Shown here one piece after another: positions 9,278 through 45,185 of a stretch of 64,000 nt of DNA. The DNA is taken from positions 92,577 through 156,576 of the forward strand of contig OZ199839.1 in assembly GCA_964304625.1 (NCBI GenBank), in the 5' to 3' direction. This DNA comes from Kudoa neothunni (lineage: Eukaryota > Animalia > Cnidaria). Position 1 is the stretch's first letter, and the number at the start of each line of letters is the position of its first letter. Position numbers and translations under genes: made by a program. Below the pieces are notes generated by a model. It saw only the letters and a program-made list of their open reading frames with translations, did not search any database and was not told the origin of the DNA.

Positions 9278-12200
9278 ATGCAGAACAAATTCAACTGTTT
9301 CGAAAATAATTCGATCAGCGCCAGTGTGGTTGTTACAGATCAAGTGAGTTGTGTGAAATATAGCTGCGAGTTCCAATGTGCTAATATTACACTGTGTTAG
9401 ATGGAAATTAACAACGAGCAACGTGCCATTTCACCATCGTCTATTTCTGATAACACTGGATCCGCCACAGTGACATATATGTGTCCAAATGTGGAGCATT
9501 TAAGATCTCGACAAATGAGATCAGATGCTGTAAAAACCAGATCGATGTTATGGCGTATAATGGTCACTACAAAAGTGAGTCGTAAATCACTTTTCAAGGA
9601 TAGCGATAGCACTTTTAATGACAATACGTTTCCATCTGATGATTCCACGAGACATTTGAGTATATATGTACAATGTGATCCCTCGAAAGAATCGAAATTT
9701 TGGCATTGTTATGCCAAATGTAAGGTGACACTGATTAGCAAAAATCCCGCAAAGACAATATCAAAAGGTTTTTTCGAATTACCACTCGCACTCGCACATG
9801 CACTCGCACACGCATCAATTTTGGAAGCGATTATAGGTGCAATAAATAAAATTCCTTTTGCTTAATTTACTGATTCCTCACAACGAAAATACTTTTTACT
9901 CAATATTCTAATTTGTCAAATCGAAAGCAGCTAATAATATAGCAGAATAATTCGATATATGGTCGTCGAAAAAACAGTAATTTCATGGGAGATAAAGGTC
10001 AACATTAAAAGGTTACATTTTCCTGTGCGCGCGTTTTTTAAATTAATAAAGATGTCTGTTGACTTGATTAAGTCCCATATTCAATTTTAATTTTGGTCAT
10101 AGTCTATCACTTAGAGTTTATGAGATTTTATCGGTTTATTAGGAATAATTAATCATAGCAGGTTGTAAGGAAACCTAATGTCTATGTTAATTATAAGTGG
10201 GAGTTGAGGAGATTAAAAATGGAGAATGCTCAAGCGTATATGCATATATATTGTGAGAATGCGTGAGTGCAGATCGATGTGAAAGCATAAATTTAATTTG
10301 ATTGTGCCAACAACCTAAGTGCATGTGCTTGAGAGCAATAACTAACTGAAACTGTTTTTATTGTTGCTGTGTAGAATTTCGAAACAACTTCACCAAAAAA
10401 GATAACGATTTCGGGTATTCTGAGTTTATATCGTTTTCCTGTCTGATGGATGCGTCTAACGAATTTTTTGAGCCAATCGAGAATGAAGACGGAAACTACA
10501 TAACCATTGTGGCCAACATTGTCACCGAGTACCCCTACGGTGTGGATTGGGATTCAAGAGGCAACACTGACCATGTTGGTCTGTTGAATTTGGGTGCAAC
10601 ATGTTATATGAATTCGTTGCTGCAAACATTCTACTTCACCAATCAACTTCGATTGGCAACCTACAACACTCCCACCTATATGGATGATGGCAATAACAGC
10701 ATAATGTACGCATTACAGTACATTTTCTATCAATTGCAGTTCAGTCAATTGGCGGTTGATACAACCCGACTCACACAAGCGTTCGGTTGGACTCAAGCTG
10801 ATAGTTTTCAGCAACATGATGTTCAAGAGTTTTGTCGTATTCTGTTGGAAAGCATGGAAAATTCGATGAAAGGCACGGCAGCTGAGAACATAATCGCCAA
10901 ACTGTTGGAAGGAAAACAAATGTCCTACATCAAATGTGTCAATGTGGACTATCAATCTGAACGAATTGAATCGGTGTACGACATTCAGTTAAAAGTGAAA
11001 GGACTACGAAATGTGTACGAATCATTCGACGATTATGTTCAAATAGAGAAACTGGATGGAGAGAATAAATATGCTGCCGAAGGTTACGGCTATCAAGATG
11101 CCAACAAAGGAGTGATATTCACACATTTCCCTCCAGTGCTGCACTTGCATTTGATGCGATTCACTTTTGATATGGAGTTGTTGGATTTTATCAAGATTAA
11201 GGATCGTTATGAGTTCCCTGATGAGCTGAATTTGGATCGTTATCTACACAAAGATCATGTCAATCAAGACGACCCTGCCACCTATACACTTGGGGCCGTG
11301 TTGGTGCACATCGGTGGCATCAACAGCGGTCACTACGTGGTGTATATTAATCCCGACTGCTCTGGTCAATGGCTTAAGTTTGATGACGATCTTGTGGTCA
11401 AGGTGAACAAAAATGAGGCTGTTGAGGACAATTTTGGAGGCTGTGGGTTGAATGTGTTCAAACCTGGCACCACCGCTTACATGCTTGTGTATGTGAGAAA
11501 CAGCGCCAAGGATCACGTCTTCAAGAGTATTGACTGCGACGATATTCCAGCCGATCTTGTTGGTCGTATCACACGAGACATTTCTCAGGAACGGTTTGCT
11601 CTCTACAAATACGAACACCGAAAAGATGTAATAACACTTAAGCTGTATTTGGAGGAGTGTTTTTATGTGTGCCAATCGGTGGGATTGATTGATAGCGGCC
11701 AGCAACATGGTTATTTGTTTGAGTTTTTCCCCACCTACACCATAGGACAAGCACTTTGTTACGTTTGCGCCCAATTAAAGATCCATTATGATAGTTGCAA
11801 AGTGTGGTTGTTCTCTGAGGAGGCAGCCAATAGCGCTCCCGGCCTACCCAGATTGCTGTCCCCCGAGAGCTACTCAGTCTTGCTCAAAGATATGACCGGC
11901 TACTCCAAACAAATATCCATATTCTTGGATACATCCATGGCGAGTGTTGAAAACATGCTAATAAATCCCCAGCATTACTTTCCTCCAACACCAATTTTGT
12001 CTTCATCCGAATGTTGTCTAATAAGTGACAACGGTCAACCTACCACTCTTTCAAATCCTGACGCCAATGAAAATGATCTGGCTTTGATATTTATCAAATA
12101 CTTCGATGTGCTATCCACCCAGCTTTCCTATGTGACTCACATGTATGTGAATCCTAATCTAACATGGAACCACTATATCGAATCGATTTTGCGTAAATGT

Positions 12201-15200
12201 GGCATTGAGTTGCATGTTGCCAACAATAACAACCAGAACCGTGACGTCGATAACAACTCCCATGATACTCGTGATGTTGATAATGGAGTGTGGGCCACCT
12301 ACAACAATAACGCTGCCAACAACAACGATCGTAACACCCCGGTGTCACTCTACATTGAAGATGTCGATGATATCCCCATTTTGATTATGGATTGTGACAG
12401 CGTTATCAACAATTATGTGATCAAGGATCAATCTTGTATACTGTGTGTACAACACAATGTTAGAAGCACAACAACAATGCCAACGCCGACGATGCTCGAT
12501 GTTACAGATTTTCCTCAATTCATACACAAATCCAACAATAATTTCGATGTAAAATTCGTCGATAAAAAATTCCCTTGGGCTGTTGGGCGTAGTTTTACAG
12601 TGAGTTGTTCACCCAACTCCAACTACTCTGATCTTATGACTATGCTCACCTCACATGTGGTACATCCTGAAGAACAAATTCAGTTGTATTACTGTCCCTC
12701 CAGCGGCACCGGTGACCATCACTTTCAACAAACCCCCAACACTCATCTCCTCACTCCTAACAACCCACTCACCGTTTTTGATATTGCCAAACAGTGTAGA
12801 TCTTTTGCAATGTCACCCGAAAAACGGTCTGAACGCATGTGTACTATTTTCTACGAATGCCTCGATATACACGTTGGCCAACTTGTGGACAATGTGCGTT
12901 TAAATCTTAAATTCATTCCTGATATTCGCTCTTTCGAGGGCAACGGTGACGACCTTGTCATCGAAAGACCACCACTATCCGATAAATTCACCTCGTCGTT
13001 CTATCTGCCACTGTTGTTGCCAAGGTGCTCTACCACTAAGCAGTTGGTTGAATGCGCCAATCAATATCTACACTCTATCAATTACCCCCTAACCAACAGT
13101 GTACGCATTTTCGAAGTGGTCTCCTCAAAAATTGTCTGTATACTGACGGATGATATTGCTGTCTCGAGAATTCTTCCTTCGATTGAAAAAACCTTGGTTG
13201 TCGAAGAGATCCCCTCCAACCAACTGCAAATGTCATTCAAACCCAACTCTACTGATCGTTTGGTTAATTGTTGTTTCTGCCACAATAAGGCAATATTTAT
13301 AATATTTGAGGGACTTTTTTAAACACTTTTTTAGAATTTTAAAAACTTTGTCGGTATTCCATTCCTCATCAGGATATCAAAGGTAAGTTGGTCATTGTTA
13401 CAATGCGCGATAATTATCGGTTTTGTTTCTTCGCTATCACAACAAAAAATGGATGTTTTTATTGTGATAACTTAATTTTGATAAATAAATTATTATGATT
13501 ATTGTTTCACCTTATTCATAATTAAAAGATGAAAATATTGTAAAAAAGATAATCTTAATTGATTATTTCTCTAATTTCTTTAATTTTAAAATTCTGATTA
13601 AAATAATGATATTTTTCATTTAAAGTGATTATTCTTCGACTTAATGTTTGTTAATTATTTAATATTTAATTAAGGAAACAGAATATTCATAAATAATTAT
13701 TTTTTACTTTATTAAAAATTAATAATCATTAATTAAGATTCAGAATATACTTAAGGGATTATTTTTCGACTTAATAATTATTAATCATTCAATTAAATAT
13801 CAGGATAAAATTAAAAGATTACTTTTCATCTCATTAAAAATTAAGGATCTTTAATCAAAGGATTATAATAAATATAAATGATTATTTTTCTCGGTGATTA
13901 TAAACATACTCTTTGTTTTGAAAAATTAAGAAAATATTCGATGGTTATTTTCCAGCATGCTTACCCACTTTACCGAATGTCACAAATATCACGTGTTGTG
14001 TGATTATTAATTAATCTCGCATTTACAGTTTTTCCTGTATGTATCAGGGGTGGCCAGGCTTACCCAAATCGGGAGCCAACTTTGAGGTTGCCAACATTTT
14101 CGAGAGACACAGGGCATTAAAATCATTTATATACCCTCTTCCTTATTTAAAATTTACATTTTTGATAGTTATTAAGATAAAATGTTGTAGAGTTTTAAAT
14201 TCAGGTTTTTAATTATTTCTTACTCAGTTAACCGCTGGACAACTCACATATAATTTTTACAGGTATAATTTATGGTGGTTTTTCCAAAAAAGTAAATTAA
14301 TAATTAATGATCCAAGAAACTTCTTCTCTATGATTAAGGTCGTAAAAATGATAAAATATTTGTCATATTTAATCATGTATGGTGGTATGACAAAAAATAA
14401 AATATTTACGAATAAAGTAATTTCACATGAATTTAACGCTTTCGACGAATTTTTTTAGAAATTATTTCAAATATTACAAGTTTTTTATGTTTCCATATTA
14501 CCCAATGAGCTGGCGGTAATCTGGTTCGTATGCTGTTAACCCGGTACGGATAAGTTCCCTCAATTGTTCGTTTATGAGGGAGGGATCCCTCGATTTTACA
14601 AACTTCATTGTTGACCAAATAGACTCACAACAATAAGTTTTTCCAAGCATAGAAACGAGTTTGAGGCCATTTTCTTTTAATTTTGAATATTTAATTTCTG
14701 AAACGTATTCAAAATTCTCTTGGTGAGTCGGAATTACGAATCATCTTTGAAGCTTTTTAATGCGTGTTTTATTCTTTCGTTATCTATCATTTTGGTAATG
14801 GATAAACACTAGTTGTAATTGTATTTCTTAATGAAACTAGTAATAATTCTAGTTTGTATCAAATATTAAAACTATATGGTAGTTTTTAACTATGTTTTCT
14901 AGTCAAAATTATTATCTAGTTTACGATTAAAGAGTTTATTTCTTCAGTTGATTAAGTAGTTTAAAAACTTACAGTTTTTCCGAGTTAACGTGCTGGCAGA
15001 ATTAAAAAAAAATTCTCAAAGACCACACCACGACGTCCAAAGAGCCACGGTTTGGCCACCCTTGGTATATATCCTTTATTGATCCTAAAAGTTATGCAAG
15101 AAGAGATATGAACTGAGTTTTCTAGGTGAATGTGTAAGTCGTCCGCGAAATAAGAGAAAGTGACTTGAAATGGAAATTTTCATAAGGCGCAAAAAATAAG

Positions 15201-20371: not shown

Positions 20372-20490
20372 TAATTATATAATTTAATTTTAAAATTACT
20401 GAGTAAAAGAATTTTACTAGTAAATTAAACGATTCTAAATAAGCATTGAATGAAAAAAAGATTATTTCATATAATACTGAATAAAATAAA

Positions 20491-23400
20491 TTAACTAAAA
20501 TTATTGGAACTATCATTTCCTAAGGAAACGAGAATGCATCGTTTATTGGTAGGATTCTTTGCGTAATTTTTTCATGTGATAATATTTTCTACATAATTTT
20601 ATCACAAAAGCATTCAAAGTAAACATACTTTAGGTAAAATGAAATAAGTACTGTGAGGCAAATAATCGCTATGATGCCCAAAGCTAATGAAAAAAATTCA
20701 CCCGGGAAATAACATTGAAAATTTACCTATAAGAGAGTATTTTGCAGGATCACTTAGAGTAGATTTAGTCTTAGGTATTTTAGGATTTTCCGTGGATTCA
20801 GTTGTTGCAGGCGATGTCTCTGGCTTAACCCTTGGTGGCATCGTCCTTGGTGGCATCGTCCTTGGTGGCATCGTCCTTGGTGGCATCGTCCTTGGTGGCA
20901 TCGTCCTTGGTGGCATCGTCCTTGGTGGCATCGTCCTTGGTGGCATCGTCCTTGGTGGTATAGTCCTTGGTGGTATTGTCCTTGGTGGTATAGTCCTTGG
21001 TGGCATCGTCCTTGGTGGCATCGTCCTTGGTGGTATAGTCCTTGGTGGCATCGTCCTTGGTGGCATCGTCCACCTTGTTCTAAAATATACAAAAATTATT
21101 CAAAATCAGTTCTAACACTACAAAGGAATAATAAAGAAAAAACTATTTTAATACATAGGAGTCCTTGAGGTAGTTGATTTCTCTTCTTGTTTGGGAATAT
21201 GGTACAAGGGATCGTACATCTCTGGACTTAAGTAAAGGTTATTAGAATATAAAAACCATTTTGACATACATCAGTGGTTTCACGCATCTTCCACGATCAT
21301 CGCAAACCTACAATACGTTTATATAATTTATTAAATTTTGATAGACCTCATCTTGTTGGCAGAATACGGATTGACAAGGTGTGCCCAGAGGAAATTCCAT
21401 CTCACATCTTCCATCATTACAAACCTAATCATTGACTTCATAATCTAATTTGTATATCATATACCATTCCCGCAGAACAACTGACACCTCGGCAATTGTG
21501 CTCATTTCGAATAGGATCAATACATTTGTGATTGAGACACATCTAAACGAATAACAGTTATCGTTGAAATGAAACATTATTATCATTGATTAATTGTTAT
21601 TTAAAAAATAAATATTTTTAGCTAGAATCTACGAAATTTAAAATTCTTTTTTACATAATTCAAAATTAGTTAACTAATTTATTCTATATAACAAAACAAA
21701 ATATTAACTGTAATTTTATAAAATACTCAAAAATTTTCATTTATTTGACCGTTACCTTACTCCCTCCACATTTGTAACCATTTGGAACAAAAACAAGCTT
21801 CCTTGGTCTTATAGGATTTGGTAGGTTGTAACTAATTTAGTCGAATGCAAATTAATTTCGTGTCAAGTATGAAAGAAAAATAACCGGCAGTTTTCCACTG
21901 TCCCATAAATATTAACGGAGTACTCCCAGTGACCTCCTGGACCAAAAACATCGCAATATAGAAGGCCGCAAGGATGTTCACTAAAAGAAGTCATACAATA
22001 ATCCATCCGAAATAAAATACCCATAATTGTTGCAAATCTTTTGATCGTATTTAAAGTGTGATTTATCATGGCAGTATTTGCTTTTATAGATGGCATATGC
22101 ATCCAAACATCTAGTGGTTAAAGAAGCTCCTATATTTAGATATATTATAGTTTTCCTAATGCAAAATTATTATATTTTTAAGAAAATAGATAATTTAAAT
22201 AGAAATGTTAATTGGCATATAACCTGTCTTCATAGATTGAGCGCATTGGTTGTGTTCATCCGCGCACTGACCACCCACACAATACCCCTGTATTTGAATA
22301 AGTTTTATTATGAGCACGCTAATGAAATAAATTCTACATACAAATCGACAGCTTGAACCATCAGTTTTATGACGATCCTTTGGACACTAAACAAATGGGA
22401 AGTTAACTTCAATGACTAAAAGGACTTTTTCATACAAAGGGGCTTCTTCCACTACACGTTTCAGCTAAGCCACATTCACCGACCGCTTCTCGACAAATTC
22501 TAGTAGTGAACTTTAGAATTTTAATATTAATATAATTTAAACAAGTTTAATGATACTCTGCAATTCTCGCAACATTCTCCATGTGAACATTGGGCATCTC
22601 GTCTAAGTTTACAATTTCGCATATCGCAACATTTATCTTGGTTGGTGAGAATGCAATTAGCTTCAAAACCGCAATCGCATTCCTCCCCAATATCCACTAT
22701 GCCGTTACCACATTTATCAAATTTGGCAAGGTTGAGTTTGTTCTAATGAATTATTCATTATTTTTTAATGTATACCGCTGCCAATAATTCGCTAACATCA
22801 TAGGTTGTATCGTAGTTACATCCTTTAATAAATTGAGTTATTTCAGCGGCCGATGAATGGCTAAAAAATGGTGGAAATTTCGCGGTCCAATTCCTATTAG
22901 TAAGTTATACATATCAATCATACTAAATTATATTTGAATGATTACCAATTTTTACGTTTATGATTCATAAGACAATTAGTATTTCCCAAGAAACAATCTC
23001 CTAGAATATTTAATTTAAAATTATAAATTCTTATTTCTTTATATTCGTTTTGGTTAATTTTTTAATATATAATCAAATCAGAATAATCACATCTTATTGC
23101 ATTTAAAAGATTAAATACCTGTGACATTATCATGATCAGAGGAAAACGAGTGCCCAAGCTCATGAGACACAGTCACCGAATTCAAAAGTGGATCATTGGA
23201 ACTTGAAAACTTAAAAATTATATTATTTCTGGATATGGAATTAAATTTTACATCAACAACAAAAAAGTTTGGACTTTTATCACACTTAAAACCACGATCG
23301 GCAATTCCAATGACAGTTTCAGATGTATTTTCTTTATTTCTTCACAGAATACAATTATATGTTATTTTTTTAATCAAAAAATTTGTTAAAAGTTTTAAGT

Positions 23401-24025
23401 TTAGATTTTAATTAATAAAAAATATTCCTACTTCCAAGGAAGGAACATAAGTTAGATTCACTATCTAATATTATATTAAAAATTACAAAAACAAAGCATG
23501 AAATCCGGGTTTTGCTGTTTTTCTGCTGTTAACAATAAACTCTTTCATAATCGCACCCATTACTCGGTTTTGTTGATCGATTTTGTTGTAATAATAAACT
23601 TCTTTGATTATTATTTTTATATTATACCAAGCGTAGGTCTAGAGATTATTACGCAATGTTGAATTGATAAAATCTAAACGATTACTTGTTGCGTAATTTT
23701 CAATGTATCTTCAATAAGTCTTGGATTTTTACTTATCGTGTCACGCTATCTATTCATGTAATGGTGTAATTATTTGTACAAATTACCATCGATATATGAA
23801 TTTGAATGTATAAAGGTATGTATATTGAATTAGGCAGTGGTTTGATTATGTCTCTTTGATAATTTAGGATCTAAAAAAGTTTAGATTGTTAAATGTCACT
23901 TAACCGTACCTCATTATCCCAGTCTCGGCCGTAACCTAACTCTAATAAGATATCATATACAAGTAAAAACTGTCGTTCAATGTACTTATTTGAAAAAAAA
24001 CATAAATGAATGTCCAACCAAACAT
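20491..24025 (-). CDS. ADAM-family (reprolysin M12B) metalloprotease-disintegrin, type I membrane protein, copy A, ~23 exons
   Basis: Minus-strand GT-AG splicing gives an open frame. Signal peptide [16 protein letters not shown]; zinc motif [12 protein letters not shown] (23129-23164); Met-turn CLMN; disintegrin [15 protein letters not shown]...CCDMRNCKL...[11 protein letters not shown]...[16 protein letters not shown]; Cys-rich CGLLYC and VPNGYKCG; two small Cys repeats; 16x (M/I)PPRT stalk; [20 protein letters not shown]; short tail with stop at 20491-20493. Confidence 0.88.
20829..21070 (-). repeat. Coding 15-bp VNTR (ccttggtggcatcgt)x16 encoding the (M/I)PPRT stalk of ADAM copy A
   Basis: Head-to-tail 15-mer array with no spacers. 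It lies in frame in the exon between the Cys repeats and the TM helix. Confidence 0.95.
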
Positions 24026-25399
24026 TATTTTTTAAGAATTAGGACATTTAATCCACGTTTGACTTCCATTAAGCTTATGTTAGGAGATATTCAGCTACAT
24101 ATATTTCTTATGATTTTTAAAAAATGTTGTATTAAAATTGATACCAAAACTTCTCCATTAAAATATTTATATTATGACAGAAACTCAAATCTCTTCATCT
24201 GCTGTATTCAGAAATATCCCACTACTTTTTATTATACTAATTGTTATAAGTAATCTGTTTTGCTGAATAAATTCTCTTCAAAATAAATATTTAATACATT
24301 TTGATCATTATAGATATGACTTTATCACTCAATCAAAATAATATTTTCAACGTTAGAATAAATAATTTCCACAAGTTTTAATCGTTTACCAGTGATAAAT
24401 AATTATTCTAAGCTTTGGTGTGAACGATCTAATTTTTATATGAGGTTTCAAAGTTATTTATATTTGAAAAATTATTCGATTGTAACACAAATCACAAAGG
24501 ATATAGATACAATCTAATTCCGTTTTATGGGCCAATTTTCATCATTATTCAAGAAGTATGTTTATTCGAAAAAATTTAATAATTGGAAATTTTTCATCGA
24601 TAAAATAAAATATACGATATTATGGATACGTGGTTAGAATAAAGAGCAGATTAGAGATACACCCAATTTACCTTAATCACGTTTGCGATTATAGATAATC
24701 TGCAGCATCCGTCCATGTCGAAGTTGACGAATTATATTATGATAATAATAATAGTAGCAACTAAATTCTTCGTATTTTACAATTTTGAAAATTTTGTTCT
24801 GTTCTAGTTTATAATATTTTCTATTTCACGAAAAACTTTATATCAATTTTTAGAAGTTTGTGCGTTTCGGCTAAATGATTATAATTAAAGGAATCTTATT
24901 TGATATAAACATAAGCACATTATATACTTATCATAATGCAATCTTATGGATCTCTTTAGTTCACCTGATTTTGAGATTAGAATTAAGTTATTAATTACTT
25001 CTTATCTCTTTAGTAATCGTTATCATTAAAAAATCAAAAATATAATTAAATTTTGAACCCTTTAATGATTTTTTAATAAGTTATACCTCAACGTGAATTT
25101 GTATTTAGAATATCTCCTTTTCTTTTAATTCAGTTTCCTCATATTTTGGATATATTTTTGACTGGAAATAATTTGTTTTTAACTGAATAAAACTATTAAC
25201 TAATAAATTTTTTATTTCAAAATTATCTTTTAAGTTGTTGATATAAAATTAATTCCACTTTTTTATTTTTTCAATAAACAGAGTATATTTTAAATAGTTA
25301 AATCATGAATTTTTATCGATATAAAACAAATATATTTAAAATAAAATATGAAAAAATCGTGTGTTTGTGTATATTGCAGGTGCGCATTAGTGGATATTT

Positions 25400-26677
25400 C
25401 TAAATGAGTGATGCGAGTGATTTTCTTTACGAATTTTTCTCATCTGGACGAAAATCTAACGGCAAACTATTCATGAACGTGATATATCATACCTGAAAAT
25501 CAATTTAATTTTTAATAAAGATAATAATTGAAGAAGTAAACGTGGAATTATTGGTGGTTTTTTCAAAGTCAGCTAATAAAAAACTCTTGCCAAACATATA
25601 AAGAATTCCAACTGCAATTCTATTTCATCTTTTTAACGATTAAATCAATTAATATTGATTATTTTCTGTCATTATCTGCTCCTAGACATTCCATTCATAG
25701 TACGATTATAGCGTATACAAATACGCATGGAAACCATTATTTCATAGGCGAATGGTACACTATTAGATAAAATTTAATTCCAAGGTTATTTAGACCTTAT
25801 ATTCTTAATAAACTATTCACTGAAATAGACGAGAACTCCTATGCATTATTTTAGGCGTCAATAAAGACAAAGAAATCTACGGAGGATTATTTTCACATAA
25901 GCGATTTACAAAAATTTCGACATACCTCCATTTTGATAACATCAAAACAAGATTAGATCGTAAAATTCAAACATATTTTATCCGATTCACAAGATGTGTG
26001 CTTTTTTTTGACGTATTGCCAAAACGATTTTCGTGATACCCAAAATGTTACATTGAATAAGCAACTTGTATCCTTCAGGGGGAGATGTCCATTTAGTCAA
26101 TATATACCCATGAAACCGGCAAATTATGATATTAAATTTTTTATTGAATCTTACTGCCAACTAACTGTGCCGAATATTAGCATATACCTTGGTAAAAACA
26201 ATTCGGAGGGACCGAAGCAATATATTGTTGATGAAAGTGTAATTATCTTACTATCAAGTCTCTATTCAATTCTGGTATTAATACTGTAACTGATAATTTT
26301 TTCCGTGGCTTTTACTAGCGCAAAAATTATTACAAAAAGGTTAAAGTTTCTGAGGACTTTATGAAAAATCACAAACGAAATACTACCTGGTCTCTTTTCT
26401 TCCAAAATAAAGCTGGCTTTGCACTAGTATGTTTTCTTTTAATGTTAAGTATGCGATAACATCCTATGTTTATAAAAACGATAAAGTTGTCATCATTTCA
26501 TCAACATGTACCATAGGTAACACTTTCAACGATGCATCTACAAATTTTAAACCTCAGACGTTGATACCTTACAATTGAATCTAGAATAGAGTTGATGATG
26601 GAGATGGATTATTGCAAACCGATTCTACGTTTTTTATAAAGGAGATGGTCATTTGTCAACTTTTACAGCTTAATTAA
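25400..26677 (+). pseudogene. Heavily decayed piggyBac (PGBD4-like) transposase, truncated at a TTAA by a nested element
   Basis: TLNKQLVSFRGRCPFSQYIPMKPANYDIKFF (25996-26289), with TDNFF and RRW remnants downstream. Confidence 0.75.
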
Positions 26678-26836
26678 CCTTCCGAGCGCCTTAAAATCGA
26701 CTAAACACTAAACACTTGATGCTTTCGGGGCCAATTTTACCCAAATTTTTATTGCATAATTGAATGCAATAAATAATTATGTAATCGCTGGGAAAATCAA
26801 ATAAAAATTTATGGACAGATTTCTGTTGCATTCCCA
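26678..26836. mobile_element. piggyBac terminal fragment (TIR ccttccgagcgcct)
   Basis: Follows TTAA at 26674. The same TIR occurs inverted at 45308-45321. Confidence 0.7.
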
Positions 26837-26840
26837 CTAA

Positions 26841-29217
26841 CCCATTAAGGTTTGTTGGGTCGAAAACCACCCACCAATAATCCCCTTTTTATTTACAAAG
26901 TTAAAATGTTTATATCTCTCTATTTTAGAGAAATAATTTTTAACGTTTCAACATTTTAAAAGTATCACTGTAGTATTTTAAAAATAATTAGATTATTAAT
27001 TATTGTTCTATTTGTCGCGAATTCACTCATTATTAGTAATAGTGCGATAAATTCTGTTCAATCAACAATATTTATTTTTAAACTTTATTGGAATATTGGA
27101 AATAATTAGGAAAAGTTTCTACGTTCAAATTAGTTGACTGTTATCGTTGTTAGAATGATAGTAAATACATTTGTTTACTGGATCAAAAACGACCCAATAA
27201 ACACTCCGGGCACGTTGGGATTAAAATGAATGATGTCAGGTTTCAATGGATATATAAAGTAAAGTGATGCTATTGATGCCATTGAAGATGATGATTTTGA
27301 TGAAATTCCAAATATCATGACCTTACCATCAGAAAGTGTTGACGTTGTTACAGATACGGAAGACAACTGTTTTCCCGTATGTGACAACATAATAAGCAAT
27401 CATGATATTCCAGAAATTTCTCGTCATGTCTAATTATAAAGTATATAGAAAAGGATTATGATGAAAATTATAAATCAAAAAACATTTTTTGGGAGACTGC
27501 TATTCCAACGGATTATCATGAACCGGCTGATATGAGTCAATCTGAAATTAATATTGATGACTTATACGAAGGTATACAATATACAATTATGTTTTAAATG
27601 ATATGTAGGATCACACGAAATTTTCCAACAATTTTTTGACAAAAACGTCATGCTTCACATTGTGAAGCGGAGCAATCTGTATGGTAGACAAAACAATGAC
27701 CATTCATTCAACCTAACCATCAACGAACTAAAACCATTTATCGGAATATTAATTCTCTCAGGCTATCATAAACTTCCGAGTCAAAAAATGTCTTGGGAAA
27801 CCGCAGAGGATTCTGGGGTAGACTTAGTGAAGAAGGCCATGACCTTAAAACAATTTAAAGAAATCAAAAAGTATATACATTTTGCTAATAATGATATGAT
27901 AGATAAGGATGATAAATTATTCAAAATACGATCATTGATCGAAAAACTAAACAAAAATTTCAAGATTTTTGGGTTTTTTGATAAAATAATTTCGGTCGAC
28001 TAGCAGATGGTTCCATATTATGGAATGCATTCGTCGAAAATGTTCATTAAAGGAAAGCCAATAGCCAATTCGTTTCGGCTTTAAAATCTGGGTTATGGCG
28101 AATAGAGCGAGATATATTTATAGTTTCAAAGTCTATTACGATAAGGAAACACAGAATACGTATTTCGGATTAGGAGAAGGTGTGATTATGAATTTCATAA
28201 GCGAAATAAATAATAAATCAGGTGTTGAAGTTTATTTCGACAACTTTTTTTCATCACATAAACTTTTCACACTTTTGAGGAGCATAAATATTAATGCGAT
28301 CGGAACTGTTAGAGCAAACCGAACTGGCCACTGTCCACTTGAACCACAAAATCATTTAAAAAAACGATAGAGGGTATTTTGAAACTTTTCACGATGGGAA
28401 TGGAATCGTTTGTGTCCAATGGAACGATACTAAACTCGTCATTTTGATGAATAATTTTTCATCTTGTTTCCCTACTCTTTCCGTAAGGAGGTACTCTCAA
28501 AAAGAAAAAAAATATATTTCAATATCACAACCAAAAATTATTAGCAAATACAATAAGAATATGGGTGGGGTAGACCTCGCTGACAATGCAATAGCTAATT
28601 ACCGAATATCCATAAAGGGGAAGAAATGGTATTGGAAATTATTCACAAACTTCTTATCTATGTGTGTCACCAACTCTTGGAAACTGATACGAAAGAGTTC
28701 AAATTCGAAACTTACATTATTACAACACACACGAATAATTGTTTCCGGATTAATAACTTCTCGTGTTAATGAAAATGGAAGAACAAGACCGTCGATTGCT
28801 TTAAATATTTTAATGAATGCATGTTTAGGTGATTCCCTTATCAGTGATCCAGAAAGAAGAAGAACAAGATGAGTTAGTTGTATGTCGCAATAAAACCTAC
28901 CATTATTGTGAAGGATGTGACTCAAGACTACATTTAAAATGTTCATCCCATTTTCCATAAAAAAATAGGATCAATATTATTCATTTTTGTTATTTAAATT
29001 CAAACTATTATTGTAAATTTAATGAAATATTGTTAAAATTTAGGCGCAGACGCGAATTTTGGGTGTTTATTGGATCGAAAATGACCCAGTCGCTTTTTTG
29101 TATTTATTTACGCTCGATACGTTATATTAAAGTGAAATTGTTCTTTTATATTGTCTAAATAAATTTTTGTATGTTTCTAAAATTTCGTTAATTTTCATTG
29201 ACCAAAACCTTAATGGG
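26841..29217 (+). mobile_element. piggyBac transposon, near full length, transposase with few lesions
   Basis: 13-bp TIRs cccattaaggttt / aaaccttaatggg, flanked by CTAA and TTAA. Motifs FIGILILSGY, SVD*QMVPYYG, FDNFFSS, AIGTVRANR, YNKNMGGVDLAD, KKWYWK. Lesions: stops at 28003 and 28370, and a 7-bp agccaat duplication at ~28056. Confidence 0.92.
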
Positions 29218-29984
29218 TTAAAATAAGTTCCGCGCCCCACCTTTTTCAAATGTATTTAATTTTTAACTTAAACTGTTTACAATTTCGAATCAAGCTTCAT
29301 GTCACATTAAAATTAGAGAAAGACAAATATATATATTTCTCTTTCATTCGAATTAAAATATGTTCGATCAGATCTAATTTAATTCATAGATGGACTTTAA
29401 AAATTAACATTTTTACTTCTTCATTCCGTCAAAAACCGCGTTAAGTGAAACTTGTGGTAATCCAACCCGTATCAGGCAAAACTTTTCTGTATTCGGGGCT
29501 TATAAATCGAAATTAAATAATTAATATTGAAAATTAATCAATATTGTTTTTGGATAAGTCAAAAAAAGAGGAGATCGCGGTTATAAATATGACAACACTT
29601 GAATTATGACCATGCCGATTCTATTGATCAAAAACCGTGTTAAACATTTTTATATTTTGTATATAAATTGATCAGTGTTTTTGTATTGTTTTATGATATT
29701 AACATTCGCTTAAAAATAAATAAGATCAAAATTCGAAATATTGATTTCAATACACGCCATACTGCCCAATTATCTCATCATTATTCACGTCACATCTTCA
29801 GTATATGCGAAGTGAAATTATTTTTTCGCTTAAAGGGATTCACAGACGTTTCGTCAAAATTTTTGGGTTGATAACTAAAAAAATGTTTTTAGAATTCTAA
29901 CCATCGTAAATTTAATAATATAAATATTCAAGTTATGGTAATTCATTGTATTTTTTAACGAATCGAAACCTCTCTATAAAAAAT

Positions 29985-32382
29985 CATCCTGTGGCTGGAC
30001 CAAATTGCAAATAATTAACTTGGAAATGAAATCGATAAAATTAAATGAACGTAAGGATTAATTTTTTTGCCTTTTCTCTTTCTAGCAAGAAAATTTTTTT
30101 ATTTATTATGAATTTTTGCGGAAGCTTCAGAATCTTTGTTGCGCATTGAAAATGAACAAATTCAATACAGAATAAGTAAATTTTTTATGAATGATCAATC
30201 AGTTAATTCGTGTTGACAATCTGGACAGGTGATTACAATTATTTTCAATTTATGTATTGAGCACACTGGCTTATTGCAAGATGTGCATTTCATTTGTGTT
30301 TTACGGTCAATATTTCTTGGACAAAATATGCATCTAACTCTTGAGCATGATAATTTTTCGTTTCCAGTTGCAATTTCAGGAATATAATTAAAATTGTTGA
30401 AAATTTTGAATCTGTATTGTAGACTAAAATGATATTTGTTGCCAGTTTGCTCTTTACGCAAAACGATTGGTGTTATTAATTGAATACCCAAATCACGAAG
30501 GAAAACTTGACGTCTACTTCGATCATTTGACCGCTACTCGGGAAACTTAACCATCCAGATAACGTACGCGTTCAGCGCCGATATGTCAATCAATTCCATA
30601 AAAACGCGAAAAGGCCAACGATTGGTTCTACTACTTCTAGAACAACTACATAATTTAGTCATTCGATCCCCATTATCACTGCGCCTTTCGGTTGATTATA
30701 ATAGATGATGACTTGAGGTTTCTTTTCGCCACTTTAAATAGAGCTATCGTGTAATTCGCTTGATAGCACTATCACGTTTTTGTTTTTCTTTGGAATATGC
30801 GAGACGATAGTTAAATCGTCTGAAAAACAAAACATGTTAGAATACTCAGGTCGACCCTTTACATTAAAAATGTTTTGCAGGATGAATCCGTTGTTTTTCC
30901 TAAGAGTCCCCGTCAACGTTAGATTCTTCTCTAACAAAAATAATGCTAGAGGGACCATCATGAAAAAATTGTCCGGTGTTACTCCACGACTACTTCCATA
31001 AAAGGAGAAACCAAGTCTATAACGACTCTTTCTCCGTGATTTTTTTTTCTCGCACGCCATTAATTTTTCCGAGATATGGCTTTAGATTTAATAAATAAGA
31101 CGTATCTACGTCTGAGGCCACCCATAACTTCATTCCGAGGCGGTCGGGTTTATTTTTCATATAAACCCGGGAAGGACATCGTCCACGGAGGGACACTATC
31201 CTTTCATCTACAGTTATGTGAGTGCCTGGAGAATAATGTCGTGTGAAGGCGGAGTTTACTTCTTTGAACATCTCATCGATGGCTTCATATGGATTTTTGA
31301 TTCCAAAATGCGGTCTTTACTCGTTCCCCTGTTGTCAAATCAAATACTCTTATATATAAGACTGAAACGATCTCTAGGGGTCGCAACAGACACAAAGTGT
31401 CGTTTAAACATGGGATTCAGGCTCCACAATTGTTTAAATGACAATTTGGAACCATTACACCTCCTTGCAGCTGTCCAAACATCAATAAAGGTCTTAAGTT
31501 CCTCCATAGTAATGAGTTCCTTATTTTGATATTTGGCTCTTGACAAACAGTATTCGTTTGTATAATACAATATTTTTTCCAAAATAATTTCTGAATAAAA
31601 TAATAGAAAAGATCCAAAAATTGAATCTACGTTATTGGATTCATCGGTGAGTCCGGAAATTGGAAGATCCTTGTTGTGGCTTTTATTCTTTCGTTTTATT
31701 TGGTCACAGCAATTCCACTCAAAGCCACTTTTTGAATGGCAAATATTAAGATTCTCCGCAGAATCATTGTTGTCGATCTCAGTATCGTTATCTCAATTAA
31801 AATCTTCGTCTGTTGACGAGTTCATCTATGCTACATGATCTTCACAATATGAAATATCTGACGACCCTTTAAATTCAACGTCACGGTCTACTTCACTGTT
31901 TTCGTCGGAATCGTTTAACATATCTTCGTATAATTTTCTTGGCATAACCTTAAAAGAATTTTTTCAGTCAAAAATAAAAATAAATTTATAGTTACTATTA
32001 ATATAACTGTAAACAAATAGAGTGTGATTAAACTAATCCACATATCGTTATTTATCGGTAAACAGTCAAAAATTAATTGTTCTGATTAACATTTTAACTA
32101 TTTAACTCTTATATTGATTTTTACGATTTTTTATCTATAACTATTGTAAATTATGGAGCAAAATATTAATGTTTAGAACGAATTTATGAAACAGGCATTA
32201 CGATAAAGCCATAATTTTACAGAATGTTTGTACAAATATCTTTTGTTCGAATATAAATTCAAAGAAGAATTAATTATCTTGGAATTGTTAAAAACATGAG
32301 AAATGTGAAGTCAAAATCAGCGAAAAAAATATTAAAATACGAAAATTGGGGTCGAGATTGACCCCACACCGCCCCACAGGGG
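29985..32382 (-). mobile_element. piggyBac transposon, decayed (PGBD4-like)
   Basis: Right TIR cccacagggg+TTAA (32383) with the internal palindrome ggggtcgagattgacccc; the left TIR is only partly recognisable. Motifs ITVDERIVSLRGRC, KPDRLGMK, DNFF, LTGTLRKN, and C-terminal CIFCPRNIDRKTQMKCTSCNKPVCSIH. Confidence 0.88.
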
Positions 32383-32386
32383 TTAA

Positions 32387-32640
32387 AGATTGTTTTCGTT
32401 CTTTTAAGTTTTTCTGATTAAATAATCCCGTTATTTGGCAAAATCTGGTATTTTGTTACTACTAAAATTTTCATTTTACATTAAACAATAATCGAAAGGA
32501 TGATATTATAAACAAGTTTTGAGTATATTCTGTTCGACACAGGATTATATACAGAGATTAATATTTTTTTAATTTTTCGAGATTTATTTTAATTTAAATT
32601 AGTCCACTCCCAGGCAAAGGTTAGTTTTCGCGCTATTAGT
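32387..32640 (+). mobile_element. Helitron-like 3' fragment (family member 2)
   Basis: Diverged homolog of 19745-20000 (e.g. tttaatttaaattag.ccactcc). Confidence 0.5.
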
Positions 32641-33729
32641 ATATAAGTAGATATAGCCAAAAAAAGAGTGAGATGTATTACACCCCAAAAATCGTTTGAA
32701 GATTAATATACCAATGAGGAATTGTTTAAAAAAGTTTTCCATAACGATCTTTAGTGTTTCCTCAATATTTTAGAAAGACCCTATCCTTAGTACAATAGAT
32801 GACGGGTAGTTTGTAATCCCATTGGGACCTCAACAAATTCACGAATCACACGTCGTCGACCGCATGTTCCGAAACATAAATGAATTGGCCATATGCGATT
32901 TTTCTTGATCTTGACTTTACTAATGATTATTTTTAAATGAAAATATGCATTAGAAAACATTTATCTGACAAAAATAAATATAATTTTATTTCGAGAAAGT
33001 CCGGAATTCTTGTAATCCCAAGTTGTTCCAAAAGTCCATAATTTACGTATCTTTCATTCGATAGAACAAATAATATATCAATGAAGTTAAATAAATTTTT
33101 AACATTATTAGTTTTGATAAAAAAGGTTAATATAAAGGAATATGAGAATTACTTAGATCCAGTGAATGACCTTCGTCTATCGTTGCCAAGAAATTAATCT
33201 GTCTTTAATGGTAAAATTTCAAGAAGCAACACAAAAAATCAATTTTATCTTTTAATATAATTATATTATACATTGATCTTTAGCATTATTAACTTTTTAT
33301 ATTAAAAAGGAAGTGACTATTGACATAGATCATAATATCCAGGTAGGTATAATTTTGAATGCATTTAATTATTTCTGACCCACCGCTTCGTTTTTAAGGG
33401 CAGAAATAATTAAGTATAGCAGATTCTAAACAACAAACTTTATTGATCAATTATAAACTGGAGTAGCCGGGATTAAAAATGGACAATGCGCAAGCGTAAT
33501 TGCCTTTTTGGATTAAAAACTTCCGTGTCAAAAGCAGTGCCTCTCCAAAATACATGCACCCGCTATTAGACGTGCGTGAAGCTTAACTCGAGATTAGTTA
33601 TCGGGATATTGCTCATAATCCATACTCTGATCAGTTATGGATTAAAGTGGTGGAGCCGCCTTTATCCATCGTAAGGGCACGGAACCCTAAACGAATAGGG
33701 AAGCGCAAAATTAAGAAAATTATTTCTTA

Positions 33730-34775
33730 CTAGCTGGAACTGCCCAGCGTTGCTTGGGGAAGATTTCACCTAGAGGCATTTTTCAATAGCATTCAAAAAA
33801 TATATTGAAATCTCGAATTAACCCATAGAAACAAAATAACTAAAAATTTTTAATCAACTTACTATAACGATTTGGATTATGTAATTTAAATTATTATAAT
33901 TTCTGTGAAGGAAAGTATCAATCCCGGCGTCCATTTAAAAATTTCGTGGCTCGGTAACTAGGTGCACCACTAACTTTTTAAGAGATAAAAAAATAGAAAA
34001 AATAAAAGAGATAGAAGAAAACTTATGAAAATTAATCGATATTGCAAAAATTAGCATCGTTTAGCTCGGCATAAACATTCATGCGCTTTTTATCATAAAC
34101 AACCACAAATTGCGTCGAGTTCAACATAAACAATTTAAATAATTTGGTGAAATAAAAGTACAACCATCCGCATTGAATTTAACCACATAAAATAAAACTT
34201 AGCGGACAATTTAATGAAACCTATGAACGCAGTATTTCCATTATAACGCTTCAATCAACGTAACTTTAACGTTCTCCACGAATTCGTTATTTATGAAACA
34301 CATATAGATTTTTTACCACATTTAAAACCATTAATAGAACTTATAAAATATACTTATCAAGTCATATACGTTAAAACTCCGCAAATAAGGAGTGTGTTTA
34401 AACAGACACCCAAATAGAAACGCCAGCCTTATATATAAAGATAGATAGAAGCAGTTAATGAACATATGATGGAGCATATAAAGAAGATAGTTAACTTCAA
34501 CCGACCATAACCATGAAATAAGCAAGTGCTAATCCTATCGTTGAACTCATTTAATCCGAAAAACAAACTTTAAATCGACAAAATCACTATTTCATAAATA
34601 CTTTTTGGAAACTTTCGTAGTCCGACAACAATTAAACGATTTTTTTAAATATCACAAATTTATAAAAATTTTATATACGGCTCTCTATAAGGAAAAAATT
34701 ATCCGCATATGCGTACTTAGGGGCATACACACACAAACAAACATACCGACAGTCCTCTTTTATATATATAAAGGA
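33730..34775 (-). mobile_element. Complete non-autonomous Helitron (~1.05 kb)
   Basis: On the minus strand it starts TC(ctttatatatataaaag...gtttgtttgtgtgt) and ends with the hairpin cccaagcaacgctgggc followed by CTAG. It sits between A and T with no TSD. The paralogous empty site is at ~20461-20480. Confidence 0.85.
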
Positions 34776-34846
34776 TAATACTGAATAAAATAAATTAACT
34801 AAAATGACAAGAATTAACATTTCATAAGGAAACAAAAATGTATATA

Positions 34847-37800
34847 TTAGTTGGAGAATTCTATACTCAATTCTTTTTTTCGACAATAATTTCTATTCAA
34901 ATTTATCACAAAAACATTCAAAGTAAACATACTTTAGGTAGACTGATGTAAGTGTCGTAACGACAATAAATACTATGATGCTCAATGCTAAAGACAAAAA
35001 TTTTTCTGGGATATAAATTTGAAAAATTACCAATAAGGGAGTATTTGACAGGAACACTTAGAGTAGATTTAGTCTTAGGTATTTTAGGATTTTCCGCGGA
35101 TTCAGTTGTTGCAGGCGATGTCTCTGGCTTAACCCTTGGTGGCATCGTCCTTGGTGGCATCGTCCTTGGTGGCATCGTCCTTGGTGGCATCGTCCTTGGT
35201 GGCATCCTCCTTGGTGGCATCGTCCTTGGTGGCATCCTCCTTGGTGGCATCCTCCTTGGTGGCATCGTCCACCTTGTTCTAAAATATACAAAAATTATTC
35301 AAAATCAGTTCTAACACTACAAAGGAATAATAAAGAAAAAACTATTTTAATACATAGGAGTCCTTGAGGTAGTTGATTTCTCTTTTTGTTTGGGAATATG
35401 GTACAAGGGGTCGTACATCTCTGGACTTAAGTAAAGGTTATTAGAATATAAAAACCATTTTGACATACATCAGTGGTTTCACGCATCTTCCACGATCATC
35501 GCAAACCTACAATACGTTTATATAATTTATTAAATTTTGATAGACCTCATCTTGTTGGCAGAATACGGATTGACAAGGTGTGCCCAGAGGAAATTCCATC
35601 TCACATCTTCCATCATTACAAACCTAATCATTGACTTCATAATCTAATTTGTATAGCATATACCATTCCCGCAGAACAACTGACACCTCGGCAATTGTAC
35701 TCATTTCGAATAGGATCAATACATTTGTGATTGAGACACATCTAAACGAATAACAGTTATCGTTGAAATGAAACATTATTATCATTGATTAATTGTTATT
35801 TAAAAAATAAATATTTTTAGCTAGAATCTACGAAATTTAAAATTCTTTTTTACATAATTCAAAATTAGTTAACTAATTTATTCTATATAACAAAACAAAA
35901 TATTAACTGTAATTTTATAAAATACTCAAAAATTTTCCAAACAAAAATAATAAAAATTTTCATTTATTTGACCGTTACCTTATTCCCTCCACATTTGTAA
36001 CCATTTGGAACAAAAACAAGCTTCCTTGGTCTTATAGGATTTTGTCGGTTGTAACTAATTTATTTGAATGCAAATTAATTTCGTGTCATAAATATGAAAG
36101 AAAAATAACCGGCAGTCTTCCATTGTCCCATCAATATTAACGGAGCTCTCCCAGTGACCTCCTGGACCAAAAACATCGCAATATAGAAGGCCGCAAGGAT
36201 GTTCACTAAAAGAAGTCATACAATAATCCATCCGAAATAAAATACCCATAATTGTTGCAAATCTTTTGATCGTATTTAAAGTGTGATTTATCATGGCAGT
36301 ATTTGCTTTTATAGATGGCATATGCATCCAAACATCTAGTGGTTAAAGAAGCTCCTATATTTAGATATATTATAGTTTTCCTAATGCAAAATTATTATAT
36401 TTTTAAGAAAATAGATAATTTAAATAGAAATGTTAATTGGCATATAACCTGTCTTCATAGATTGAGCGCATTGGTTGTGTTCATCCGCGCACTGACCACC
36501 CACACAATACCCCTGTATTTGAATAAGTTTTATTATGAGCACGCTAATGAAATAAATTCTACATACAAATCGACAGCTTGAACCATCAGTTTTATGACGA
36601 TCCTTTGGACACTAAACAAATGGGAAGTTAACTTCAATGACTAAAAGGACTTTTTCATACAAAGGGGCTTCTTCCACTACACGTTTCAGCTAAGCCACAT
36701 TCACCGACCGCTTCTCGACAAATTCTAGTAGTGAACTTTAGAATTTTAATATTAATATAATTTAAACAAGTTTAATGATACTCTGCAATTCTCGCAACAT
36801 TCTCCATGTGAACATTGGGCATCTCGTCTAAGTTTACAATTTCGCATATCGCAACATTTATCTTGGTTGGTGAGAATGCAATTAGCTTCAAAGCCGCAAT
36901 CGCATTCCTCCCCAATATCCAATATGCCGTTACCACATTTATCAAATTTGGCAAGGTTGAGTTTGTTCTAATGAATTATTCATTATTTTTTAACGTATAC
37001 CGCTGCCAATAATTCGCTAACATCATAGGTTGTATCGTATTTACATCCTTTAACAAATTGAGTTATTTCAGCGACCGATGAATAGCTAAAAAATGGTGGA
37101 AATTTCGCGGCCCAACCCCTATTAGGAAGTTACACATATCAATCATCCTAAATTATATTTGAATGATTACCAATATTTACGTTGATGATTCATAAGACAA
37201 TTAGTATCTCCCAAGAAACAATCTCCTAGAATATTTAATTTAAAATTATAAATTCTTATTTCTTTATATTCGTTTTGGTTAATTTTTTAATATATAATCA
37301 AATCAGAATAATCACATCTTATTGCATTTAAAAGATTAAATACCTGTGACATTATCATGATCAGAGGAAAACGAGTGCCCAAGCTCATGAGACACAGTCA
37401 CCGAATTCAAAAGTGGATCATTGGAACTTGAAAACTTAAAAATTATATTATTTCTGGATATGGAATTAAATTTTACATCAACAACAAAAAAGTTTGGACT
37501 TTTATCACACTTAAAACCACGATCGGCAATTCCAATGACAGTTTCAGATGTATTTTCTTTATTTCTTCACAGAATACAATTATATGTTATTTTTTTAATC
37601 AAAAAATTTGTTAAAAGTTTTAAGTTTAGATTTTAATTAATAAAAAATATTCCTACTTCCAAGGAAGGAACATAAGTTAGATTCACTATCTAATATTATA
37701 TTAAAAATTACAAAAACAAAGCATGAAATCCGGGTTTTGCTGTTTTTCTGCTGTTAACAATAAACTCTGTCAGAATCGCATCCATTACTCGGTTTTGTTG

Positions 37801-38250
37801 ATCGATTGTGTTGTAATAATAAACTTCTTTGATTATTATTTTTATATTATACCAAGCGTAGGTCTAGAGATTATTACGCAATGTTGAATTGATAAAATCT
37901 AAACGATTACTTGTTGCGTAATTTTCAATGTATCTTCAATAAGTCTTGGATTTTTACTTATCGTGTCACGCTATCTATTCATGTAATGGTGTAATTATTT
38001 GTACAAATTACCATCGATATATGAATTTGAATGTATAAAGGTATGTATATTGAATTAGGCAGTGGTTTGATTATGTCTCTTTGATAATTTAGGATCTAAA
38101 AAAGTTTAGATTGTTAAATGTCACTTAACCGTACCTCATTATCCCAGTCTCGGCCGTAACCTAACTCTAATAAGATATCATATACAAGTAAAAACTGTCG
38201 TTCAATGTACTTATTTGAAAAAAAACATAAATGAATGTCCAACCAAACAT
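34847..38250 (-). CDS. ADAM-family metalloprotease-disintegrin, copy B (tandem paralog of copy A)
   Basis: Same exon structure as copy A, offset ~14.2 kb. Zinc motif at 37354-37389, 9x MPPR(T/R) stalk, [20 protein letters not shown], tail [15 protein letters not shown] with stop at 34847-34849. Confidence 0.88.
35133..35270 (-). repeat. Coding 15-bp VNTR x9 encoding the MPPR(T/R) stalk of ADAM copy B
   Basis: Same unit as in copy A, with variant units ccttggtggcatcct (MPPRR). Confidence 0.95.
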
Positions 38251-39203
38251 TATTTTTTAAGAATTAGGACATTTAATCCACGTTTGACTTCCATTAAGCT
38301 TATGTTAGGAGATATTCAGCTACATATATTTCTTATGATTTTTAAAAAATGTTGTATTAAAATTGATACCAAAACTTCTCCATTAAAATATTTATATTAT
38401 GACAGAAACTCAAATCTCTTCATCTGCTGTATTCAGAAATATCCCACTACTTTTTATTATACTAATTGTTATAAGTAATCTGTTTTGCTGAATAAATTCT
38501 CTTCAAAATAAATATTTAATACATTTTGATCATTATAGATATGACTTTATCACTCAATCAAAAATATATTTGCAACGTTAGCAAAAATAATTCTTCATAA
38601 GTTATAATCGTTTATCAGTCATAATTAATTTTCATAATTTTCTTTTAAACGATTTAATTTGTATAATAAGAATCAAAATTATCCTCTCTGATAAATTATT
38701 CGATTGCAATATGAATCACAAAAAACACAAATACATTCGAATTCAGTTGTATGAACTAATATTCTAACATTATTCATGGTTATTTGAGAAAAAGTATATC
38801 TATTCAATATAATTTAATAGTTGGAAATTTTTTATCGATAAAATAAAATCACGTTGTTACGGAAAAGTTAATAGAACAAAAATAAGATTAGAGACCCACC
38901 CAATTTACTTTAATCGCGTTTACGATTGCAGATAATCTATAGCACCCATTCACATTAAAGTTGTCAAATTGGATTATGATAATAATAGCGACATTCTTTG
39001 TTGTTTACAATTTTGAAAATTTGGATCTTCCCTAGTTTATAGGATATTTTGTTACAATACAAATATAATCGTCTTATTATAAATTTTAAAACAATTGTTG
39101 TAAAGTTCATGCATTTCGATTAAATAATTATACTTAAGGGGCTAAACTAGAGTTTTAGATCACACCGCGTGTAATACTAATATAGTAATCTTCCTAAAAT
39201 TAA

Positions 39204-44079: not shown

Positions 44080-45185
44080 CAGCGCTTCCCGATTCGTTTA
44101 AGACTTCGGACCCCCCCCATTAAATTAGATATTTTAAAACAGATATACCTTTAGTAGAAAATGAAGTTAGTTAAATTCGAACATAAGTTTTCCAAAAATT
44201 ATACAAAAACAAAAATGAAACAACACTTTTCATAACAAAAAAATATAATAACTGTAGTTAAAAAAATTAATTCGGTGTTTGACTTTTTTCTTGTCTTTTT
44301 TGGAAACAATAACATCAAAGCGAGGCTCTTTATTGGATAATGATAAACACATCATTTTCGGGATTGAGTGAATTTCGATATTTATTTTTTATATAAAGTA
44401 GTGTGGAAAATCCAGCTTCACAAAGCCAAGTTGTTGAGAATTGAACTAATATTTGGAGTGCTCTTTTCGAAAGGGTAGGATATTGAATTAGAGTTCCGCA
44501 CCAAAAATGTTCGAGCGAACTAGAATCAAATAACAATTTCATGGAATGGCATTCTCGCAAATCGATCAGATTTTCTTTTTCTTCGTCATTATCATTCATT
44601 TTGTCCAATTTGAATGCAAAGGGGTTAATGATCCAACTCTCTGACTCCTGTATTTCTCCAGCGGTGAAATAATCATCAAGTGAATATCTCAATCCATCCA
44701 AATGCTCGCATATATATATATATATATATATTTTGAAATCCTCAAAAACATTGCTCGTATCATTCAAAACGATTTCTTCCAGAGAAGGAAAATTCGCCAA
44801 GTAAGCTAGAATAGATGAGAAATTAGGAATTTCAAAAGTACGCGCAAGATCAGATTTTTGTTCGAATAGAAAGTTCTGAATTTCGTTTCTAAGTTCGAAA
44901 AACCTAGTTAAAGCTTCGCCTCGTTAAAGTCAACTGACTTCGGTATAGTACAGAAGTACAGATGCTTCTTCATCCAAGTCACTGCAAAATGCCTTGAAGA
45001 GTCTGTGGTTTAGAGCTTTGCCTTTGATAAAATTTACAATTTTTATGCAAGAGTTCATAACGTTTCTCAAAATTTCTGGCATCGTTTTTGACATGAGAGC
45101 TTGTCGATGAAGGATACAATGGGTAATAGTAACGTCGGGAATTCGGTTCCGCATTAGAGTAGCAAAACCGGATCGTTTTCCAATA
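44080..45185 (-). mobile_element. hAT (Buster/Charlie, ZBED5/SCAND3-like) transposon, 3' half
   Basis: Terminus cagcgcttccc at 44080. Motifs THCILHRQAL, KIVNFIKGKALNHRLF, LLYYTEV, WIINPF, FSTTWLCEAGFSTLLYIKNKYRNSL. Stops and an (AT)n insertion are present. Confidence 0.88.

Follow-up and report, generated by a model that had tools for sequence, protein, structure and literature searches.

How do two neighbouring genes come to be near-identical over most of their length while almost every coding difference left between them alters the protein? The question is posed by a 64,000-nt stretch of DNA (the window) from Kudoa neothunni, located on contig 2 of a four-contig, 40.26-Mb assembly. Kudoa neothunni is a myxozoan, and its assembly was built on HiFi reads from an infected yellowfin tuna host (40.2 Mb after purging, QV 48.5, GC 30.4%, intron length 49 nt); the paper describing the genome makes no mention of ADAMs (PMC12239612). 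A sequence-only reading of the window had placed a pair of paralogous ADAM protease genes at 21150-37820. The pair is present, although the genes reach further (20543-38250), and both lie on the minus strand, where all peptides quoted in that reading were found:

20543..24025, minus strand: ADAM gene A; 23 exons encoding 689 aa in one open frame, 22 of 22 introns GT-AG
34847..38250, minus strand: ADAM gene B; 23 exons encoding 654 aa, same architecture as A
20830..21071, minus strand: stalk tandem repeat of A; 15-nt coding unit, 16 copies
35134..35270, minus strand: stalk tandem repeat of B; 15-nt coding unit, 9 copies

Gene A encodes, in order, a putative signal peptide, an M12B catalytic domain, disintegrin, Cys-rich and EGF-like domains, a Pro/Thr/Arg repeat stalk, a membrane anchor and a short tail. 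The difference in protein length between A and B is due to the stalk repeat. Exons 5-16 of A have bounds identical to those obtained when P0123, a spliced relative recovered from a public run (502 aa, 32% identical), is aligned to A DNA, and A and B agree in exon sizes with 15 other members of the family in this genome. Exons 1-3 and 22-23 of A are less certain, their basis being splice signals, the open frame and paralog exon sizes. An earlier model, which had an additional 29-nt exon and gave exon 9 as 118 nt, was abandoned in the light of the paralogs and P0123; the counts given below stayed the same. When the A model is projected onto B the frame stays open and the splice sites are intact. 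No RNA run holding the gene was found in the public run listing.

Database searches were run exon by exon. They returned Disintegrin and Reprolysin-like Pfam matches in A (PF00200 above cut-off) and PDB matches to the disintegrin part. Direct exon searches were too weak for the Cys-rich domain, which was therefore placed through P0123: this relative scores above cut-off for PF08516 and was aligned to ecarin and VAP1, and the assignment was transferred to the exons of A. The N-terminus is hydrophobic (11-residue mean 1.68), making it a candidate signal peptide, and the membrane helix reaches a 19-residue hydropathy of 2.77 in A (aa 654) and 2.44 in B (aa 619), with basic residues following. Elsewhere in the window there is a USP7 gene (9401-13322, plus strand), comprising a MATH-domain piece and 958 intron-free codons, which is unusual beside the intron-dense ADAM genes, and a protein kinase exon (PF00069; 58409-59047, plus strand).

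The zinc motif of the catalytic domain lies at:

23126-23164 (aa 168-178) in A and 37351-37389 in B, minus strand: zinc motif

The three His and the Glu of HExxHxxGxxH are retained, and the Gly is replaced by Ser in both genes. The same Gly to Ser replacement occurs in the paralog L037; L040, in which the third His is missing, may encode a pseudo-enzyme. The Met of the Met-turn (aa 194) lies 16 residues past the third His, inside the 12-24 residues typical of M12B proteases, and is kept in 17 of 17 members. The prodomain, of some 200 aa, is missing: the first strand of the catalytic domain begins near aa 40, with no Cys and no furin site ahead of it. Instead the putative signal peptide runs directly into the catalytic domain (23787-24025 in A), as it does in B and in the paralog models (loci L026-L040, L043 and L048). 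A prodomain encoded in 24320-24820 was ruled out, there being no start and frame-breaking indels between A and B. P0123 also lacks a prodomain and carries an in-frame stop three codons ahead of its ATG.

These genes belong to a family of at least 17 in the genome with a common exon structure, and a prodomain is absent from all models of its members. In another sample, one contig carries what is probably the L026 orthologue (64% identical), with an equally short N-terminus. A second, more distant fragment, L042, is 53% identical to A/B, shares their 97- and 45-nt exons and is probably their orthologue, so that K. neothunni is younger than both the family and the A/B lineage. Judged from these sequences, loss of the prodomain looks family-wide and likewise older than the species. 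No close A/B orthologue was found by a word search with the disintegrin exon, which returned one fragment, or by a subsequent large search; this is not evidence of absence. Five models look disturbed and possibly represent pseudogenes: L027 has a 41-nt gap in the Cys-rich part and a long 21-nt tandem array past the EGF part, L034, L035 and L038 have shifted or merged exons, and L039 is alignable only to about aa 430. In view of the absent prodomain, we term the genes ADAM-like by domain content rather than canonical ADAMs.

Comparison of A and B along their length reveals an abrupt change in identity:

20794..24320: homogenised core of A; ~99% identical to B, the 295 nt upstream of the start codon without a difference
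35098..38545: homogenised core of B; counterpart of the A core
24321..24820: old upstream flank of A; ~79% identical to B 38546-39050, 103 of 488 aligned sites differing; not homogenised
20471..20793, minus strand: old 3′ part of A (stalk end, membrane anchor, tail and 3′ UTR); ~77-86% identical to B 34775-35097
33720..34780: high-copy repeat of 1.05 kb with at least 39 genome copies, where B loses its 3′ homology to A

Across the membrane anchor, tail and 3′ UTR, 64 of 280 sites differ between A and B. The old 3′ part has a pN/pS of 0.7-0.8, and by this measure appears to be still weakly constrained. Homology between the genes stops within 0.5 kb beyond them on both sides, their neighbours are unrelated, and the ~10 kb of transposon-rich DNA separating them consists mostly of transposons. 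Transposon remains in the window (26830-29220, 29800-32360, 33720-34780, 44333-44923 and 52060-52638) include piggyBac-like pieces (PF13843), a hAT piece (PF05699) and the 1.05-kb repeat. A 28-nt inverted pair occurs at 27177/29063, and a 371-nt inverted repeat (39385-39755/40062-40432, 85% identity) lies just upstream of B.

A simple young duplication is ruled out by flanks that are ~20% diverged. Diverged flanks combined with identical runs in the core argue for conversion within a tandem pair, as opposed to alleles or a fresh duplicate. From the contrast between ~99% and ~80% identity we infer that the tandem pair is old and that its core has been overwritten by gene conversion. The near-identical paralogous pair recognised in the earlier reading is thus real, but its near-identity reflects conversion between old paralogs and not recent duplication.

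A global alignment of A 21080-24025 with B 35279-38250 gave, from start codon to stalk repeat, 35 substitutions and two intronic indels (24 nt and 2 nt). Split on the splice model, 25 substitutions are non-synonymous (affecting 23 residues), two synonymous and eight intronic, which bears out the earlier estimate by eye of about 24 amino-acid changes against about two silent ones. The differences are far from evenly placed. The densest cluster holds 13 within 170 nt, and three identical runs of ~560-745 nt, introns included, sum to 2,042 nt; neither was equalled in 20,000 random placements. Introns differ at 6% of sites within the islands of difference and at 0.2% in the rest of the core. The islands are three in number:

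22815..22983 (B 37040-37208), minus strand: island 1; Met-turn, next loop and C-terminal helix; 10 non-synonymous, 0 synonymous, 3 intronic
21760..21922 (B 35983-36147), minus strand: island 2; Cys-rich hypervariable loop; 8 non-synonymous, 0 synonymous, 3 intronic and a 2-nt intron indel
23544..23583 (B 37769-37808), minus strand: island 3; loop past strand 2 and adamalysin helix start; 4 non-synonymous

The nine replacements without a silent change reported around the Met-turn are as stated, with the three intronic changes there having gone uncounted. The letters of B and both indels are present in contigs of four public runs (one sample, probably that of the assembly itself), and the A and B letter sets occur at about equal depth in the two large islands of these contigs. 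Given that the run contigs carry both letter sets, consensus error is ruled out: the differing letters are not assembly errors.

Two origins for the islands were considered and rejected. If they were unconverted relics of the old duplication, silent changes should be as frequent as in the flanks; there are none in ~65 silent sites (P ≤ 5e-6 at flank-level divergence). A third paralog as donor is likewise rejected, none in the assembly exceeding 71% nucleotide identity.

Where do the changes fall in the protein? Positions were mapped by way of P0123, its alignment to ecarin and VAP1, and a structure model in which the catalytic domain is fairly confident and has an adamalysin fold (TM 0.8 by the target). 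Four changes (aa 91-104) map to the start of the adamalysin helix, which in this fold lies away from the cleft; this helix is not a known specificity site. The C-terminal helix of the catalytic domain carries four more (aa 213-227), and another four are scattered (aa 249, 449, 465 and 529). Six changes (aa 413-429) fall in the loop between two Cys motifs that bound the hypervariable region; these were placed by sequence because the model is unreliable in that part. The remaining five (aa 189-204) are predicted to lie in loops around and after the Met-turn, that is, in the lower subdomain. An N-glycosylation sequon at aa 202 in A is removed in B by two of the island 1 changes. Changed positions are variable and mostly exposed. 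Exon-level PDB searches with the islands gave no match.

The lower subdomain forms one wall of the substrate pocket (PMC4885070). The sequence-only reading also had the Cys-rich hypervariable region mediate recognition; changes are found there, but the exosite role of this loop in ADAMs is a hypothesis and not established (PMC4885070). The description of the changes as clustered at specificity-determining regions holds for 12 of 22 scored changes, which occupy the lower subdomain and hypervariable loop (14% of residues, with bounds drawn after the data were seen); it does not hold for the four on the C-terminal helix and the four at the adamalysin helix.

The ratio of non-synonymous to synonymous change in the core corresponds to an omega of 3.4-4.1 under five mutation models. 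Tested against an omega of 1, coding sites gave P values of 0.024-0.055 gene-wide and up to 0.064 in small windows, from 27 coding differences among which neighbouring changes inside one island are not independent. With introns as neutral sites and a control for local neighbourhood P was 0.001-0.045; each island alone, set against its own neutral sites, was not significant (P 0.07-0.14). P values of 0.02-0.06 are weak for a pair chosen by way of a genome scan. Across the family, the background is one of purifying selection: a one-ratio model (M0) of seven older members gave an omega of 0.125, and older pairs gave 0.18-0.37 over whole domains. With 0.32 taken as the background omega, the P value of the A/B count is 2e-6. 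The A/B pattern consequently reflects either positive selection or full relaxation. The 95 conserved columns contain no scored change (0 of 22; P 0.008), and all 40 cysteines are the same in A and B. A family site test (M2a) was uninformative, being borderline with an implausible omega of 40. The residue typical of the family is shared by A at seven sites and by B at two; with polarity based on residue sharing and branch lengths, B seems to hold more of the derived residues.

Five other close ADAM pairs in the genome serve as controls. The inverted pair L030/L031 (contig 3, ~2.115 and 2.147 Mb, 99% identical) shows nine non-synonymous, one synonymous and one intronic difference. Five of the nine amino-acid changes are in the lower subdomain and hypervariable loop regions (P 0.004) and one more is inside the zinc motif, making this pair the best independent support for selection. 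Taken jointly with A/B, omega is 3.7 (P 0.011 against 1). The pattern is not repeated in L028/L027 (four non-synonymous, nine synonymous); L035/L034 has a single coding change and L032/L033 none. The last of these (C1 17.06 Mb and C2 12.00 Mb) is 99.8% identical over at least 8 kb near the ends of two chromosomes, and may represent a subtelomeric duplication or assembly redundancy. In the tandem pair L036/L037 (C2 11.84-11.85 Mb) homogenisation spans 1.47 kb, starting where the catalytic domain ends and reaching the EGF part; the catalytic domains themselves remain divergent (omega 0.35). When A/B and the four other young pairs are pooled, leaving out L036/L037, the ratio of non-synonymous to synonymous changes is 39 : 12 and omega 1.05, meaning that the non-synonymous excess belongs to some pairs and not to the family. 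Overall, the diversifying selection proposed in the sequence-only reading has moderate support from an omega that nominally exceeds 1 (3.4-4.1, P 0.02-0.06), from the sparing of conserved columns and from a second pair; the pooled value speaks against it.

Together these analyses probably point to selection for distinct substrate or ligand contacts acting under gene conversion. On this view A and B are tandem paralogs of long standing that code for membrane-anchored ADAM proteases, and conversion repeatedly overwrites the core specifying the ectodomain. Once the copies had been homogenised, amino-acid changes would arise in the Cys-rich loop and around the substrate cleft, at positions that are variable; selection, we infer, favours or protects them, such that conversion tracts erasing them are lost. 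Short islands of difference would then accumulate as silent differences elsewhere are erased by conversion. The outcome would be two proteins with the same scaffold and the same promoter-proximal DNA, with different cleft walls and with a glycan site beside the cleft in one only. Most likely A and B would act on different substrates or binding partners at the parasite surface.

The main competitor, which we regard as rather unlikely, is that selection relaxed after conversion: one copy, probably B, became redundant, its omega rose to near 1, and the lack of silent changes is chance, picked up by the genome scan, with clusters arising from uneven ages of conversion tracts. The P values of just 0.02-0.06 against 1, the pooled omega of 1.05 and the weak asymmetry towards B all suit such a history, as does the concentration of intronic changes in the same islands (6% versus 0.2%); several family members also look broken. 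However, a gene free of constraint would hardly avoid conserved columns and cysteines altogether (P 0.008), both A and B keep open frames and intact splice sites, the old 3′ part appears weakly constrained (pN/pS 0.7-0.8), and L030/L031 has changed in the same regions.

It is less probable still that the islands are patches from old divergent alleles or from an absent copy, with A and B shuffling variants and thereby escaping fish antibodies. The patchy pattern of differences, their location at variable and mostly exposed positions, and the gain or loss of a glycan site would fit, but the assembly contains no donor, the sample's runs hold just two letter sets in the islands, and old alleles should have brought silent changes as well; moreover, the genome paper reports apparently low diversity (PMC12239612). 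It is very improbable that two alleles were mis-assembled as the tandem genes A and B, or that the differences are consensus errors. The assembly is of low coverage and from an infected fish. The letter sets stand at approximately 1:1 and their depths add up to that of the shared core, as would be expected of alleles and of paralogs, the two looking alike in read depth taken without a single-copy control. Against this, the differences are found in independent short-read contigs, the flanks are 80-86% identical and give way to unrelated neighbours with ~10 kb of transposon-rich DNA between the genes, and the HiFi assembly was purged and has a QV of 48.5 (PMC12239612).

Selection under conversion may also extend beyond this locus. 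Tentatively, and as something possible more than probable, we suggest that Kudoa and its relatives have an undescribed family of at least 17 prodomain-less ADAMs, shared between species, in which young duplicates time and again diverge rapidly in the Cys-rich loop and at the cleft wall, under selection driven by the host and despite conversion. If this is true, A and B are a natural pair for mapping how ADAMs choose substrates and how they are controlled in the absence of a prodomain. Of the 23 ectodomain residues that distinguish A from B, half lie in the cleft wall and hypervariable loop, and the pair provides a ready test of the exosite hypothesis (PMC4885070). A and B are also candidate host-interaction proteases of a tuna parasite.

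The evolutionary process is already known; the protease family is little described. No report of prodomain loss, conversion or selection for these genes was found in the literature, a result that does not prove novelty. P-III snake venom metalloproteinases and group-A ADAMs (M12B) share the catalytic, disintegrin and Cys-rich domains and are the best sequence and fold matches of P0123. They form tandem families with fast change at surface residues. The Kudoa genes differ from them in having a membrane anchor, a repeat stalk, no prodomain and Ser for the Gly of the zinc motif; they come from a fish parasite and there is no sign of a venom role. In myxozoan transcriptomes M12 is the largest metallopeptidase group (the table gives 17, 22 and 7 in its first three columns), and reprolysin and disintegrin domains are found there together, in one case with a membrane tail; prodomain loss, selection and conversion are not reported in the parts of that study drawn on here (PMC7296530). 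M12B proteases are all said to carry a prodomain (PMC4885070). A parallel is ADAMTS13, an M12B protease that works without a normal prodomain, its own being of 41 residues and dispensable (PMC4885070); its domain set is different, and the Kudoa genes appear to have no prodomain at all.

For the islands themselves the precedent is the model of Teshima and Innan, in which islands of divergence form between converting paralogs, and the Drosophila pair CG18281/CG17637 (PMC2588116). Like A/B, the Drosophila genes are an old pair with a homogenised core and higher divergence at its edges, and in both pairs local peaks of difference in the coding region are accompanied by linked neutral changes. Unlike those of the Drosophila pair, the islands of A/B are younger than the duplication and almost purely non-synonymous.
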